64,000 nucleotides of DNA from Phaeosaccion multiseriatum (Eukaryota > Protista > Ochrophyta, other classes): the NCBI GenBank assembly GCA_965112735.1, contig OZ218960.1:2976001-3040000 (forward strand), in the 5' to 3' direction. How positions within the stretch are numbered: position 1 is the first letter of the stretch; each line of letters opens with the position of its first letter. Positions 54,731-62,790 of this stretch are shown in pieces. The notes under the pieces were generated by a model that had not been told where the DNA came from, did no database searches, and worked only from the letters and a program-made list of their open reading frames with translations. Both the position numbers and the translations under genes were made by a program.

Positions 54731-56513
54731 TCACTGCCCCCCCTTACGCCTCGTTCCCCTAGCCCCTTGGCCGGCCTTCGGTGCTACGACTCTCCTCGCC
54801 GCTGTACGTGCTGCTGCTCCCGATTGCTTCCTCTGCCCGGCTGCTCGCCCCACCACTACCACACCCCGCTTCACCGCAACTGCTCCCTTCGCCTTTCCTC
54901 CTCCCTGTGCCCTCCCTCCTGCTCCTCCCCCTCCCCCACCTTTAGCCCCTCCTCCACCAGCCTTTCTGACAGTCCGTTGGCTGCTCGCCTTGATCGCCTT
55001 GACCGCCTTGGCCTTGCCCTTCTTCACGGCATCCGCCGCAACCTGTGTGAAGGCCGTGGCCCCCTTGATCTTGCTCGCCGCCTGCTGCTGCTTTGCCTGC
55101 GCTGGCTTACCATTGCCACCACCGTTGGCACTGCCCTGCCCCTGCCCCTGCCCCTGTCCCTGGCCCTGTTTTGCCTTGCCTGCCCTGCCGCCCAAGGACA
55201 CGGAGAACGTCGGGGGCTTCTTGTCGCCCCCCTTATTGTTATTGTTGTTGTTACTTTTGTTTGTGGCCTGGGCTGAGCCTCCCCCCATGGAGGCAGTGCT
55301 GAAGGTGACTCGCATCTTACGCTTCATAGCGAGGCTGGGGGCGGTTTCCGTTGCCGGGGCGCGGGCGGGCAGGGGCTTACCACCCTGCTGCTTAGCCTTG
55401 CCTTTACCTTTCGGCGGCTGAGCTCTAGGCTTGGGAGGTGCCTAAAGCGCGGCAGGGGGGAGGGGAGAGGGAGAGAGAGAGGGAGGGAGGGAGAGAGGAG
55501 CAGAGGAATAGGTCAGCCAAGGTAGGGAGAGCTCCGCATCCCTCGTGTGTCATTGGCTGCCATCTTGCCCTCTTCCCTTCCGCCCCTTTGCCCGTTGTCT
55601 TGGCTCCCCACCTTCTTGTTCTGCGTAGCTGCCTTTGCCTTCCCTTGTGATTGTTGTTGCGGCTGCTTCGCCTTGGCCCTGCCTCTGCTCGACTTGGGAG
55701 AAGCAGCGGCAGGTGTCACTTTGGGACTAGCTCTTACCCTCTGTAGCTTCTCCCTCTTCGTCAGTGGCGCTGCCCCACCCCCCTTCCCCTTGTTTGCTAC
55801 CAACTTGGCTGCAGCAGCACCCTTAGCCCGTCCTCCTCTTGCTGTTGCTGCTGGTGGTGGTGGTGTTGCCGCTGGAGCCTTGAGACCACGCTTCTTGGCG
55901 ACGGCAGCTGCCCTTCCTGCTTTGGTCTTGTTGGCTGCCGCTATCTTTGTTGAGGAATTGGGCTGTGCGTATGAAGGAGAGACGAGAGAGGGAGGGGAAA
56001 GGGAAGAGGAAGTGGGACGGTGAAGGTCAGCAAAATGATTCTGTCAACTAAACTGGTGAGGGTTAGTGAACAACTTGAAAGACAGCGGACAGACAAATAA
56101 AACGGGACCCGCCCCCTCATTAATAGAGCAAAAGAGCAAGAAATGCTACTGTCATACTGACCAAAGACGAAAGCCTCAGCCCCTACTGCATGCCGTCCCG
56201 CGGAACTTGCAAGAAAATTCTACCGCCGACCTGCCGACCTGCCTCGCCCCGACAAACGAATTTGACTCTTGCCGCGGAGCTTAGATGATACCGCCTGCTT
56301 CACCCTACCTTCCCTCCCTATCGCACTGGTCTACTCCTTCGCTTCCCTCGTGCAGCGCCACCCGGACGGGCGCTCGCAACTGCTCCCCGGACTCACCCGT
56401 GGGCTCACCGCCTTGTTCTCTTTCCCCTCCGCTGTCTTCTTCTCGGTCTTTCGCGCCTTGATGATGTCGTCCAGGGGCTGATCAAGGATCATGTCCACCG
56501 CCGCTGAGCTCAT
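54731..56513 (-). CDS. Basic K/A/G-rich disordered protein with an N-terminal UAP56-binding-like motif (ALY/UIF/CHTOP-type); 3 exons
   Basis: Exons 56513-56397, 55962-55612, 55441-54731 join in phase 0. ILDQPLDDIIK resembles the LDMSLDDII UBM. No RRM visible. Confidence 0.65.
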
Positions 56514-56663
56514 TGTATCTTGTTACAGCCTCGGATATCGGGTTTCTTTTGTTTTTGGCGATAATCCTTCGGTCAAGGAGTTTGAAGATGGCATTGACTG
56601 CCATCTCGACTCTCCACTCTCCCGCCTTCATTTCCCGTAGCTCAAAGGAGAAGGGACAGGAGA

Positions 56664-59600
56664 ATGAGACGAGAACATGCTGCCAGAGCAACAAACGTAG
56701 AAGATGTAGACCAGAGAGGAGAAGAAGGGGTAGCGCATCGATGGGGTGGACGAAGGCGCCGGAGAGTGCTGTGTCGGGAGGAGAGGAGGAGGTCCACAGC
56801 CTCCCTGGCCTCCCTTGCCTCCGCGTCGCTCTCCTGCTTGCTTCTCGCCCCCGTGTCGCAGGTTCATGGGTTCGCTCCGTGCCCTGCAACGAGCTACGCG
56901 TCCCTTTCCCCTTCTTCCCGACCGTCTGCAATTGGCCCACTGCTTCGACCACAGAGCGACTCCACTCGGCCGCGAGTCGCCTCTACGTGGGCCTGCGGCG
57001 GCTCTCCACGCCTTAAGGCGACGTGGGCTCGCGAAAATTTCGGTATCAGTAGCAGTAGCAGCAACATCAGCGGCGGCAGCAGCAGCAGCAGCAACAGCAG
57101 CAGAAGGAGGGGGGCCAGCTGGAGGACGGGCAGCAGAAGAGCCTGCAGTGAGGAAAGCTCCAGCGAAAGAGACCAAGAAGAGGTCAGCAGCAGCAGTGGT
57201 AGTGGTGCGAAGAGTAATAGTAGCAGCAGTAGCAGCGGCAGTAGTAGTAGTCTACCCCGTCGCATGGAGACGCTCCTCTCCCTGCTGGAGGCCGAGCCGG
57301 ACGCGAGGGCAAAGAGCGAGCTGCTGGTGCGAATGGGAGACGCTTTCTACAACCATTGCAAGGACCAGGGCCAGGGTCAGGGCCATGGTCCCGGTCAGGG
57401 TCAAGGTCAGGACCGCTCCTCTGCGCCCTCCCCTCCACCCCTGCTCTTCTCCTCGCCCTCCATGGCCGCCTCAGCTCAACGTGTGCCCGGCTGCGTGTCA
57501 GCGGTGAGCATCGCAGTCTCGGTGACTTATCCCATCGCCAACAGCGAACCCGAACCCGAAGCAGCGCCGCAGACCGCTCCGGCCCACCTCCCGAGTGCGA
57601 CTGTGACTGTGGAGGGCACAGCCGATGCCCGAGTGACGCGGGGGGTGGTAGCCCTCGTGTGCACAGGGCTTACAGGAGAGGACCCAGAGAGCGTCTTGGC
57701 GCTGGACAAGCAACAGGTAAGATGGCAGCGAACGTCGAGGTGCATCTCACCTCTCACACCTCACTCCTCCCCCCTCACCCCTCACTCCTCACACCTCACA
57801 CCTCACCCCTCACACCTCACACCTCACACCTCACACCTCACACCTCACCCCTCACACCTCACACCTCACACCTCACACCTCACCCCTCACACCTCACACC
57901 TCACACCTCACACCTCACACCTCACACCTCACCCCTCACACCTCACACCTCACACCTCACACCTCATACGTCCAACTCACACCTCACACCTGAATCCTCA
58001 CACTTCACACCTGAATCCTCACACCTTATACACATGTCTCCTCCTCCTCCTCCTCCTCCTCCTCCTCCTCCTCCTCCTCCTCCTCCTCCTCCTCCTCCTC
58101 CTCCTCCTCCTCCTCCTCCTCCTCCTCCTCCTCCTCCTCCTCCTCCTCCTCCTCCTCCTCCTCCTCCTCCTCCTCCTCCTCCTCCTCCTCCTCCTCCTCC
58201 TCCTCCTCCTCCTCCTCCTCCTCCTCCTCCTCCTCCTCCTCCTCCTCCTCCTCCTCCTCCTCCTCCTCCTCCTCCTCCTCCTCCTCCGCCACCTCCTCCT
58301 CCTCCTCCGCCTCCTCCTCCTCCTCCTCCTTTAGGTGGCCGAGCGGCTGGGGCTGCGGGCCATGTTGACGGAGGGACGCATCAACGGGCTGCGCAACATC
58401 ATCGACAGCGTGCAGAAGCAGGTCAAACAGCAGTATGGCAAGCAGCAACAGGTCAGTGTCAAGCAGCAACAGGTCAGTGTCAAGCAGCCCCCTCCTCCCC
58501 CAAGCATGACGTCAATACCATCAAGCAGGTCAACCAGACTCACTCACTCACTCTGTCCCTCCCTCCCTCCCTCCCTCACTCACTCCCTCACTCAGTCCCT
58601 CACTCACTCACTCACCTACTCCCTCCCTCCCTCACTCACTCACTCACTCACTCACTCACTCACTCACTCACTCAACTCACTCACTCACTCCCTCCCTCCC
58701 TCCCTCCCTCGCTCACTCACTCACTCACTCAGTCACTCACTCCCTCACTCACTGACTGACTGACTCACTCACTCACTCACTCACTTACTTACTCACTGAC
58801 ACACTCACCCCCCTTCCACCCACCCACTCCCTCCCTCCCTCCCTCCCTCCCTCCCTCCCTCCCTCCCTCCCTCCCTCCCTCCCTCCCTCCCTCCCTCACC
58901 CTCCACAACACCATGCAGGTTAAACAGGTGGCGGTTTCACAAGCCCTCTCTCTACAGGAGCAGGTGAAGCGAGCACTCTCCTCTTCCTCCCCAAGCGGCA
59001 CTGACGGTTCCTCCGTTGCAGGGGGGGGGGATGCGATGGCCCCAGTGCTGAGCATTCGGCCGCCAGAAGAAGGTGGAGAGGGAGAGGCAAGGGCTGTCTT
59101 AGAGGCCGCTACTCGGCCTAGGGACGAGGGGGAGCGCAGCAGCTTGACTACCAACAGTAGCAGCAGTGGCAGCAGCAGCAGTGGCAGCAGCAGCAGTAGT
59201 CGTAGTACCGCCAGCAGCAGTAGGAGTGGGGAGATTCGGGGCAGCGAAGAGGTGGCGGTGCTGCTCAGCGGAGGCGTGGACTCCTCCGTCGCCCTCCACC
59301 TCCTCCTCCAACAAGGTCTCAAACCACGCGCCTTCTACCTCAAGATCTGGCTCGAGGATGAGCTGTCGTACCTGGGCACATGCCCCTGGGAGGAGGACTT
59401 ACGTTACGCGGAGGCGGTGTGTGCACAGGCAGGTGTACCGCTCGAGGTCTTGTCGATGCAGAGGGAGTACTGGGATCAAGTGGTGAGCTACACGATTGCC
59501 GAGGCCAGGGCGGGGAGGACGCCCAACCCGGATATTATGTGCAACAGTCGCATCAAGTTTGGCATGTTCTACGAGCTTGTGGGAAGATACTATGAGAAAG

Positions 59601-62600
59601 TGGCCACGGGACATTACGCGCAGGTGAGGGAGGGAGGGAGGGAGAGGGAGGGAGGGGGAGGGAGAGGTTCAGGGAGAGGGACATAAAGAACGAAGGAAGG
59701 AAGGAAGGAAGGAAGGAAAGGCGAAAAGCAAGCAAGCAAGGAAGGAGAACACTATCTGACACACCCCCCATACCCCTCCCCTCCCCTCCCCTCCCCTCCA
59801 CTCTCTTCGTGGCCAAGGAAGGTGGTGCACCGCGAAGGCCAACCGTCGCACCTCCTTCGCAGCCCTGACCTCATCAAGGATCAGTCATACTTTCTCTGTG
59901 CCCTCTCCCAGGTGGGTTGAGTCGAGTTGAGTTTCAGTTTAGTAGACCTCACTGACTGTACTCCACTACTTTTGAGTTTCAGCCTTTTGGACCTTTTCCA
60001 ATTCCCAGCACCGAGAAGTTGCTTGGTTAGGAAGCGAGTTTGTCCATGGGGTGTACTGGACTGATGAGAAGTGATGAGCTGAATTCCTCAATTCCTGGAC
60101 TGATGAGAAGTGATGAGCTGAATTCCTCAATTCCTCAATTCATCGCCACATTGAGTTCTGACTTGCTTAGCTATACTCTATACCCTATACCCTATACCCA
60201 TACCCCATCATTTTCCTCAATTCCTCAATTCATCGCCACATTGAGTTCTGACTTGCTTAGCTATACTCTATACCCTATACCCTATACCCTATACCCATAC
60301 CCCATCATATTCCTCAATTCCTCAATTCATCGCCACATTGAGTTCTGACTCGCTCCTCCTCTCCTCCTCGTCCTTCCCTTCCTTCCTGTGTCCTTTGCCG
60401 TCGTGTACCCTATACTCTATACCCTATATCCTATACCCTATACCCATACCCCATCATACCTTACACCCTCTACACCCTACCCTACACCCTATACCCTATA
60501 CCCCATACCGTACACCCTTTACCCTATACCCCATATCCTACACCATATACCCTGTACCCTATGCCCCATACCCAATACCCGATACCATATATACTATACC
60601 CCATACACTACACGCTATACCCTATACCCCATACCCGATATACTCCGTACCCCATACCCCGTATACTACACCCTATACCCTATACCCTATACCCCACACA
60701 CTACACCCTATGCCCTATACCCTGCATCCTGTGCCCTGTGGCCTATGACCCTTTGTAGGAGCAACTCGGCAAGGCTCTGTTCCCGGTGGGCGGCTACACA
60801 AAGGATGAAATCAGACAACTGGCCAGGGATTTCGATCTGCCCACACAGGTCCGTCAGTCAGTCAGTCAGTCAGGCAGTCAGTCAGTCAATCAGGCAGGCA
60901 GTCAGTCAGCCAGTGAGTCAGTGAGGAGCGGGGCAGAGGCGGGAAGAGACCGGCTGTTTAGGCTGGCTGGCTGACGGGTTGGCTGACTGACCTTGACCTT
61001 GACCGGACACCCCTGACCCGTCGCTAACTGACCCCTGAGACACCACCGCCTGTGCGTGCTGCTTTCTCGTTCGTGCGCTGCTGCACCCATACTCTTTTTT
61101 CTCGGCACTCACACACACACACACACACACACGCGCGCGCGCACTCACACACACACACGCATGCACACACGAATACACGCATACACACACGTATACACAC
61201 ACAAACACACACGCATACACACACGAATACACGCATACACACACGTATACACACACAAACACATACATACACACACGCACGCACACACGCATCTAGAGCC
61301 GCAAGGACTCGCAAGGTATCTGCTTCCTTGGCAAGCTCAAGGTACGTTACGTAAGCCTTACGCAATGCTTTGTATCGTTATCCTCGTGTTGGATTCTTAC
61401 GTGATCCTCCCCATGCCTTGCGTAATCTTTTCTATTCTTCATGTTCGTTCTCCCTCCGTCCATCCAGTTCGATGACTTCCTGCGTCACTACTTGGGCGAG
61501 ACGCCCGGCCCCTGTGTGGAGTACGGCACTGGGGAGGTCATCGGGACGCACCGGGGGCTGTGGTTCCACACCGTGGGGCAAAGGAAGGTGGGAGTGGTCT
61601 GTTTGAATTTCAGTGTCTTTGTGTAACACAATCCTATACACGGTTTGTACACGGTTTTCTGTGTCTCTCCCCCCCCCCTCTCTCTCCCTCCGTCTGTCTC
61701 TGTCTTTCATGCCTTTTGTCCGACACAGGTTGTTGCACATCACTCACTCTCCTCTTCCCCGTTCCCTCCACCCCCCTCCCTCCCTCCCTCCCTCCCTCCC
61801 TCCTCCCTCTCTCCCTCCTTCCCTCCCTCCCCCCTCCCTCCCCCCTCCCTCCCTCCCTCCCTCCCTCCCTCCCTCCCTCCCTCCCTCCCTCCCTCCCTCC
61901 CTCCCTCCTTCCCTCCGTCCCTCCCTCCCTCCCTCCCTCCCTCCCTCCCTCCCTCCCTCCCTCCCTCCCATCAACTGCCATCCCTCCCTCCCTCCTTCCA
62001 CAGGGCATCGGCCCTGTCCTCGAGCCCCGCGTGATTCACAGAGGGCCCTGGTACGTCGCCGCCAAGGATCAGAGCACCAACACGCTTGTTGTGACCAATG
62101 ACTACGCTGCTGTGGACGCTCCCCGAGAGGCCTTCTTCCTGCAGGGCGTGAGGTGGATCGGTGAGCACGGCCTTAAGCAGCAGCAGGAGGAGGAGGGGCA
62201 ACAGTTGGTAGTACAGCAGGAGGGGGAGAGTGGTAGCAGCAGCAGCAGCAGTAGCAGCGCATTGGCTATGATCGGCGATGGGGGGGATGGCAGTGGATGG
62301 AACGGTATGATCTTCGACGTCAAAACCCGCCACGGCCCCTCTATCCAGCGTTGCTCCTTGCTTATGACAGGGCCGGCCCGGGGCCTGGTGCGCCTTCTCG
62401 AGCGGAAAGACTCAGGTCTGGCAGCCGGGCAGTACGCAGCGCTGTACGAGGTGTCGGGACAAGGTGAGAAGTCAATGAAGTCCATGAAGTCAACGATGCG
62501 TTGCGTGGGCAGCGGGGTGATTGAGGTGCTTCCGCTGGGGCTGAGCGTTGAGGAGGCGCTAAGGGAGGCCAAGACACAGGCTCAGCAGGCACAGCAGTTG

Positions 62601-62717
62601 GTGATACAGCCACAGGAGGAAGCACAGGTTCCGGAGGCACAGCAGTTGGTCATACAGCAGGAGGAACCACATGTTCAGGGGCAAGCAGAGCTCTCGTCAG
62701 TCGATGGCAGCCGATGA
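56664..62717 (+). CDS. mnmA: Predicted plastid-targeted fusion of a SufE domain and tRNA-specific 2-thiouridylase MnmA; 8 exons
   Basis: Exons 56664-57716, 58335-58451, 58919-59623, 59822-59911, 60759-60848, 61297-61341, 61468-61587, 62004-62717; every length is a multiple of 3. Leader [17 protein letters not shown]. SufE: [36 protein letters not shown]. MnmA: [66 protein letters not shown]. Confidence 0.9.
57750..58330. repeat. (CCTCACA)n 7-mer array followed by a ~290-bp (CCT)n tract, intron 1 of SufE-MnmA
   Basis: Direct reading. Confidence 0.92.
60056..60750. repeat. Local duplications plus degenerate (TATACCC)n array, intron 4 of SufE-MnmA
   Basis: CTGGACTGATGAGAAGTGATGAGCTGAATTCCTCAATTC x2; TCCTCAATTCATCGCCACATTGAGTTCTGAC x3; TACCC-rich tract. 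Confidence 0.8.
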
Positions 62718-62790
62718 TACTTTCCGCTTCATCACATGGAGCAGCGCGGGAGAGTCCCCAGCAGTTGGTGCTGCAACAGTACAACAACAA

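Follow-up and report, generated by a model that had tools for sequence, protein, structure and literature searches.

Does a plastid-bearing alga encode a tRNA thiolation enzyme that carries its own sulfur donor? This question is raised by a locus of the ochrophyte Phaeosaccion multiseriatum, located within a stretch of 64,000 nucleotides (positions 2,976,001 to 3,040,000 of the forward strand of contig OZ218960.1, assembly GCA_965112735.1), which is referred to as "the window" in this study. In a preliminary description made from the letters of the window, a SufE domain and the tRNA thiouridylase MnmA had been read as one spliced open reading frame (ORF) behind a plastid leader, and a dedicated SufS to SufE to MnmA route had been proposed. 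Here we report that the locus, at window positions 56664-62717 on the plus strand, is likely a nuclear gene encoding a single polypeptide, which belongs to a red-lineage family of SufE-MnmA fusions and would serve as a tethered sulfur relay in the plastid stroma.

Domains and catalytic residues of the fused protein

The rebuilt gene has eight exons and seven introns and forms a 977-residue open frame with zero internal stops, as expected from the earlier reading of one frame with no stop codon between SufE and MnmA. All seven introns are in phase 0 and carry GT..AG borders, and each exon length is divisible by three, bearing out the seven phase-0 introns noted before. Met1 (at 56664) is the only in-frame ATG after the in-frame stop at 56595-56597.

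The MnmA part was identified with all of its domains. PF03054 was found in exons 3, 4 and 5 (E value of 3.8e-41 in exon 3), PF20259 in exons 7 and 8 (5.7e-13 in exon 7), and PF20258 in exon 8, which completes the three-domain layout consisting of a PP-loop HUP domain, a PRC barrel and a C-terminal beta-barrel. Exon 3 also matched the MnmA structures 2HMA, 9HLV and 2DER in the PDB at E values of about 1e-26. The PP-loop motif SGGVDS occupies residues 507-512 and, like the other MnmA motifs, is invariant in an alignment of 53 fused sequences. D595 and C598 lie within NPDIMC, which aligns with NPDVMC of 2HMA and thus marks a D-type MnmA, and C694 lies within DSQGIC, corresponding to the near-invariant SQ..CF columns of the same alignment. 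The catalytic or cluster residues of E. coli MnmA are D99, C102 and C199. Judged by these features, the product is a D-type MnmA, predicted to be a tRNA 2-thiouridine-34 synthase. The full MnmA that had been placed behind a Q/S linker is therefore present, with all three Pfam domains and the catalytic residues.

The SufE domain is split between two exons. PF02657 was detected in exon 1 (profile positions 33-91, residues 269-349, 28.5 bits against a cutoff of 27) and carries on in exon 2 (profile positions 94-121, 17.5 bits). Because the SufE profile runs on across intron 1 (from 91 to 94), the link between exons 1 and 2 is supported. The key residues are Cys277 in RVPGC, GTADA at residues 318-322 and RING at residues 366-369; the Pfam matches across exons 1 and 2 and these residue positions agree with the complete SufE, with its persulfide Cys, ADA and R.NG motifs, that the preliminary description had recognized. 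The domain is interrupted by a GQ repeat and a PE/A-rich loop, both of them lineage-specific insertions.

A profile built from 18 fused SufE sequences, with that of the window as the first, matched the SufE structures 3G0M (E value of 8e-24) and 1MZG (1e-22); the match covered E. coli and Salmonella SufE in full length (residues 9-137), and CsdE was matched at about 1e-16. In the profile alignment with the PDB sequences, the G-C pair at Cys277 aligns with the GC loop of E. coli SufE, the persulfide-accepting cysteine of which is Cys51. The cysteine and the G-C pair are invariant in both the 53-sequence fusion alignment and the 18-sequence SufE alignment, and little or no variation is seen in the GxAD and RxNG motifs among red algae, diatoms, Chromera and this alga. 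A homologue search by word index returned zero matches for the SufE region of the window and, for that of the closest full-length homologue (P0002, described below), only P0002 itself; the index is too coarse for a blank result to carry meaning.

Transcript evidence and gene structure

Public sequencing runs were compared by their word content over the exon-plus-intron stretch, where the exonic share is about 0.40. Because runs X1, X4 and X5 hold 0.85-0.89 of the exon-plus-intron words, and lack intron joints, they were taken to be DNA and used as controls. Run X6 holds 0.39 of the words, matching the exonic share, and behaves as RNA. Read contigs were placed on positions 58290-62740, a stretch that runs from exon 2 on (exon 1 and intron 1 lie outside it), with simple repeats masked (58290-58338, 58529-58907, 59153-59212 and others).

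In one X6 contig of 1515 nt (record 27), exons 3 to 8 are directly connected; it covers 59213-59616, 59820-59909, 61466-61587 and 62004-62740, and X6 also carries GT..AG joints from 59909 to 60757 and from 61339 to 61466 (each cut +2), which are absent from the DNA runs. This contig together with the joints confirms introns 3 to 7.

Intron 2, which separates SufE from MnmA, was approached through contig ends. Record 25 of X6 (759 nt, depth of 34.2) ends at 58453, that is, at the end of exon 2 plus GT. Record 26 (depth of 33) starts at 58916 and carries 10 further letters that are not in the genome at that place, and hence it begins 13 nt before exon 3. The donor lies in a perfect 21-bp tandem duplication at 58439-58480 (two copies of CAAGCAGCAACAGGTCAGTGT), which creates twin in-frame donors at 58451 and 58472; the use of 58472 instead of 58451 would add seven residues (VSVKQQQ) to the linker between SufE and MnmA. 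When a k=31 de Bruijn graph was simulated with both donors spliced to 58919, the out-branch fell 2 nt after exon 2 and the in-branch 13 nt before exon 3, and both branch points match those of X6. A mixture of spliced and unspliced transcripts, worked out by hand, would put the in-branch 3 nt before exon 3.

X6 depth is zero at 58454-58528 within intron 2, a segment that the DNA runs X1 and X4 cover. Record 26 leaves the genome upstream of 58916, and the ATG at 58913 is not in it. These results provide strong, though indirect, evidence that exon 2 is spliced to exon 3 as two in-frame isoforms differing by seven residues. RNA spanning 58451/58919 had been named beforehand as the check on the fusion: a contig directly bridging the junction was not obtained, whereas contig ends matching two-donor splicing were. 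The separate SufE and MnmA transcripts that would have spoken for two genes were not borne out, X6 having no depth at 58454-58528 and the ATG at 58913 lying outside record 26. Upstream of 58339, record 25 has another 644 nt, which cannot be the (CCT)n microsatellite of intron 1; they would fit exon 1 back to a (CAG)n run near 57077.

Two further observations were made on the X6 contigs. At 59133, X6 has G (33 of 33) where the window, X1, X4 and X5 have A, so that a linker codon reads GGG instead of GAG (E462G); as X6 comes from another sample, either strain variation or editing may account for it. In addition, a contig of low depth (6.8, compared with 51.6 for the spliced contig) lies within intron 5 at 60927-61099, pointing to a small fraction of pre-mRNA or of transcripts with the intron retained.

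The features of the gene are collected in Table 1.

Table 1. Positions of the parts of the SufE-MnmA gene in the window
Feature	Positions	Strand	Remarks
Hydrophobic signal-like core and VHG|FAP motif	56799-56879	+	Residues 46-72; an S/R/P-rich, transit-like stretch follows
Exon 1	56664-57716	+	351 codons: start, leader, S-rich low-complexity stretch, first part of SufE
SufE domain, N-terminal two thirds	57276-57716	+	Pfam, SufE-domain alignment (n=18), PDB profile match
SufE Cys277 codon (RVPGC)	57492-57494	+	Predicted persulfide carrier
Intron 1	57717-58334	+	Phase 0; 7-mer repeat and about 290 bp of (CCT)n
Exon 2	58335-58451	+	39 codons: SufE C-terminal helix region (LGL..RINGL..), start of Q-rich linker
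Intron 2	58452-58918	+	Phase 0; at the SufE/MnmA boundary; 21-bp duplicated donor, (CACT)n/(CCCT)n repeats
Exon 3	58919-59623	+	235 codons: Q/S/G-rich linker of about 110 residues, then MnmA PP-loop domain
Motif codons in exon 3	59267-59284; 59531-59542	+	SGGVDS; D595 and C598
Exon 4	59822-59911	+	30 codons: MnmA HUP domain (KDQSYF)
Exon 5	60759-60848	+	30 codons: MnmA HUP domain
Exon 6	61297-61341	+	15 codons: DSQGIC, second catalytic Cys694 (codon 61321-61323)
Exon 7	61468-61587	+	40 codons: MnmA PRC-barrel domain
Exon 8	62004-62717	+	237 codons and stop: end of PRC barrel, inserted Q/E/S stretch, C-terminal beta-barrel, Q-rich tail

Intron 1 is open in the exon frame nearly throughout, and a naive ORF caller would read 556 residues across it. 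The introns are almost wholly microsatellite at 57717-58334, 58452-58918, 61100-61290 and 61740-62000, the types being (CACCTCA)n, about 290 bp of (CCT)n, (CACT)n/(CCCT)n and (CA)n. Intron 4 contains an element (60227-60524) with a DNA word depth of about 35,000 in X4, compared with about 450 in its flanks (some 75-fold); locally, a unit of about 110 bp is repeated three times in direct orientation ahead of a long (CCCTATA)-like array, and this points to a high-copy dispersed repeat. Upstream of the gene, an ORF on the minus strand (56331-56513), which starts MSSAAVDMILDQPLDDIIKARK..., begins about 150 bp from the ATG of the fusion gene. The start of this ORF had zero matches in Pfam; its LDDIIK motif recalls Aly/REF-type export adaptors. 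The gap between the two may be a very short bidirectional promoter region.

Relatives and origin of the fusion

Exon 3 was searched with phmmer against 1.84 billion representative proteins, and the best 150 matches were kept. In many of these MnmA relatives, the MnmA domain starts 200-750 residues into the protein, and SufE lies upstream of MnmA in 61 of the 150 according to jackhmmer (53 according to phmmer). Pfam assigned both SufE and PF03054 to all 53 fused homologues, and all of the best 120 clusters from a profile search with these 53 sequences (120/120) carry PF02657 and PF03054. Diatoms named among the profile matches are Seminavis, Cyclotella, Thalassiosira, Nitzschia, Cylindrotheca and Discostella; cluster members include the diatoms Attheya and Epithemia, Chromera velia, and the red algae Porphyridium purpureum, Agarophyton chilense and Cyanidiococcus yangmingshanensis. 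The expectation that both families would occur in one protein elsewhere among algae thus held for red algae, diatoms and Chromera. Altogether, SufE and MnmA share an ORF in more than 170 homologous clusters, among them ORFs free of introns and complete MMETSP transcripts. P0002, the closest homologue of full length (617 residues), is encoded without introns by one ORF of a 9.96-kb metagenome contig.

In several metagenome and Logan contigs, a SET domain (PF00856) precedes SufE-MnmA, forming triple fusions of 1142-1186 residues (P0041, P0211, P0213, P0216, P0220 and P0223; in P0041, SET lies at residues 46-256).

A quick maximum-likelihood tree was made from the MnmA part only (78 rows, midpoint root). 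All 44 SufE-bearing rows fall into one clade with a support of 98 in the Shimodaira-Hasegawa-like approximate likelihood ratio test (SH-aLRT), and the window protein is inside it, adjoining P0002. Red algae occupy early branches of this clade. Five N-terminally short rows within it have no SufE and are most likely truncated fragments. A separate clade of 15 rows (support of 99), with N-terminal extensions of about 16-170 residues and no SufE, holds Mesostigma and Vaccinium/Rhododendron, i.e., the green lineage, and short bacterial-type MnmAs are outside both clades. A gain of SufE in the red lineage is the parsimonious, though not proven, reading of the direction of change. We consider it fairly likely that the fusion arose once in red algae after the green split, and was spread by endosymbiotic transfer to ochrophytes, chromerids and apicomplexans. 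Based on domain content and tree position, the gene belongs to a SufE-MnmA fusion family whose members occur in red algae and red-plastid eukaryotes (diatoms, Chromera, apicomplexans and this alga).

The diatom and red-algal entries closest in kind, annotated as MnmA from Seminavis robusta, Nitzschia inconspicua and Cyclotella cryptica, and from Porphyridium purpureum (KAA8497046.1), Agarophyton chilense and Cyanidiococcus, share the domain set (SufE + PF03054 + PF20259 + PF20258) and the clade of the window protein, with 55-68% identity in the MnmA N-domain. However, the window copy differs from these in its seven introns, a leader and low-complexity region of greater length, and two SufE insertions, and it reaches 977 residues where 600-850 are typical of those entries.

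The same architecture has been described in Apicomplexa. TgMnmA (TGGT1_309110) is localized to the apicoplast, and a SufE domain was listed for it (Yang et al. 2022, PMC9420914). PfMnmA (PF3D7_1019800) carries an N-terminal extension of 421 residues in which bioinformatic evidence pointed to a SufE-like structural domain (Swift et al. 2023, PMC10219651); such a domain was described there in the MnmAs of B. microti, T. annulata, T. gondii and E. tenella too. In the same study, a sulfur route from SufS through the SufE-like domain to MnmA was proposed for PfMnmA, genetics showed that apicoplast SufS is required for MnmA function, and SufS and MnmA, not the free-standing SufE, were needed for apicoplast maintenance in P. 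falciparum (PMC10219651).

Like the window gene, TgMnmA and PfMnmA are nuclear-encoded, and in each a full MnmA is preceded by a SufE or SufE-like domain; both are plastid-targeted, and plastid targeting of the window protein is plausible. An apicomplexan cluster of the ESM Atlas is the top feature neighbour of P0002. However, the apicomplexan MnmAs are far more divergent, have longer, insertion-rich extensions and are not among the best 150 relatives of its MnmA part. The window protein groups with unnamed sequences, beside diatom and red-algal members.

As PMC9420914 and PMC10219651 already hold it for Apicomplexa, the conclusion drawn from the fusion, namely a dedicated SufS to SufE to MnmA route, is not new. 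Nor is the architecture, and the gene is an ordinary further member of a known family. In a full-text literature search, no paper was found that treats such a fusion from haptophytes, diatoms or red algae; database entries do exist. Its spread across the red lineage was not found stated in the papers searched; PMC6558291 and PMC8639094 mention SufE and tRNA enzymes but not the fusion.

The proposed sulfur relay, its alternatives and its meaning

Both domains have intact catalytic residues, and they are joined by a low-complexity linker of about 110 residues that varies between species. We envisage that SufS, the cysteine desulfurase of the SUF system, would load a persulfide onto Cys277 of the tethered SufE in the plastid stroma, and that the linker would let the SufE loop reach the MnmA active site. 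The next sulfur acceptor would be Cys694 or, alternatively, a labile [4Fe-4S] cluster bound by D595/C598/C694; after adenylation of C2 by the PP-loop domain, the sulfur would replace the oxygen of U34. The targets would be plastid tRNA-Lys, -Glu and -Gln. In this way, tRNA thiolation would gain a SufE of its own, separate from the free SufE that feeds SufBCD. These steps are inferred from E. coli SufS-SufE, MnmA structures and apicomplexan genetics.

Separate polypeptides serve as donors in the known bacterial systems. B. subtilis YrvO-MnmA and E. coli IscS-TusABCDE-MnmA also employ a D-type MnmA with the PP-loop, DxxC and a second Cys, and share with the window protein a dedicated route for cysteine-derived sulfur to MnmA. 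However, their donors (an IscS/NifS-type desulfurase, Tus) are not attached, whereas the window protein has an attached SufE, presumably served by a plastid SufS.

Given a real, conserved fusion whose SufE cysteine does not vary (n=53), a tethered relay from SufS through the SufE domain to MnmA is the best reading. The dedicated route of the preliminary description is thus supported by the conserved fusion and the invariant Cys in 53 homologues, without being new; the relay is an inference both here and in PMC9420914 and PMC10219651.

Several points weigh against the gene model or the relay. A direct transfer from SufS to MnmA was also considered by Swift et al. (PMC10219651). The SufE domain of the window is divergent, with exon 1 just above the Pfam cutoff, and when its SufE piece alone was searched by phmmer against the PDB, only low-complexity noise was returned. 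No listed X6 contig bridges 58451/58919, the link there resting on contig ends, equal depths (34.2 vs 33) and homology, and the 5' end of the mRNA was not seen in the X6 contigs placed on 58290-62740. Lastly, the hydrophobic core of the leader starts at residue 46, behind an unusually long, highly charged segment of 45 residues, which is atypical for a signal peptide.

SufE is also fused to a client in Arabidopsis, where the plastid uses SUF: SUFE1 is a SufE-BolA and SUFE3 a SufE-NadA fusion. Their partner domains differ from MnmA, and the green-lineage MnmA clade has no SufE. Such plant fusions to other partners leave room for the alternative that the fusion is real while SufE performs no sulfur relay in cis, and instead assists in SufS docking or activation, hands over or protects a [4Fe-4S] cluster, acts in trans or is a structural remnant. 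The ability of D-type (E. coli-type) MnmA to carry a labile [4Fe-4S] cluster, with its chemistry under debate (PMC13066941), points in the same direction. However, the persulfide Cys, GxAD and RxNG are invariant or nearly so, which argues for a working sulfur acceptor, and the tether to MnmA has been kept across red algae and several red-plastid lineages, for which transfer to MnmA is the simplest account. We therefore regard this alternative as unlikely.

The relay in the stroma also presumes plastid import. The bipartite leader of complex red plastids consists of a signal peptide, with Phe at +1 of its cleavage site, and then a transit region of hydroxylated or basic character. The core (residues 46-66) is followed by VHG|FAP at residues 67-72, the motif that the preliminary description had reported behind a hydrophobic stretch, and then by the S/R/P-rich stretch; a bipartite plastid leader is plausible on these grounds. 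The protein might instead be mitochondrial or cytosolic, or translation might start at Met209 to give a leaderless SufE-MnmA, as the position of the core, the unobserved mRNA 5' end and the minus-strand ORF starting only about 150 bp upstream would allow. This seems quite unlikely to us, however, since: the frame is open for 208 codons before Met209; record 25 of X6, judging by its length, reaches about 210 nt upstream of Met209; the core is succeeded by G|FAP and the S/R/P-rich stretch; P0002 and P0001 begin with clear signal peptides, and red-algal homologues, such as that of Porphyridium, with a transit-like leader; and apicomplexan orthologues were localized to the apicoplast by experiment.

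Two adjacent genes, with SufE ending in intron 2 (without splicing of which its frame reaches a stop at 58763), MnmA starting at the ATG at 58913-58915 directly before exon 3, and the fused frame a coincidence of phase, would agree with the want of a single listed contig across the junction, but are most improbable in view of that ATG lying outside record 26, which leaves the genome upstream of 58916, the absent X6 coverage at 58454-58528, contig ends that match exon 2-exon 3 splicing exactly, and the more than 170 homologous clusters with both domains in one ORF.

Discussion of the fusion has so far been confined to apicomplexan parasites, and the gene extends it to a free-living photosynthetic alga. 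No new question is opened, the architecture already being in public databases. Together with the homologues found, it indicates that the tethered SufE has an old origin and a wide distribution within the red plastid lineage, and strengthens the published hypothesis that 2-thiolation of plastid tRNA takes sulfur from SufS via a built-in SufE. The algal and red-algal proteins, being shorter and less insertion-rich than PfMnmA and TgMnmA, are tractable for biochemistry. If the single red-algal origin is true, a private SufE for tRNA thiolation would be a general trait of red plastids and no apicomplexan oddity, and this would explain why the free SufE is dispensable for apicoplast maintenance.

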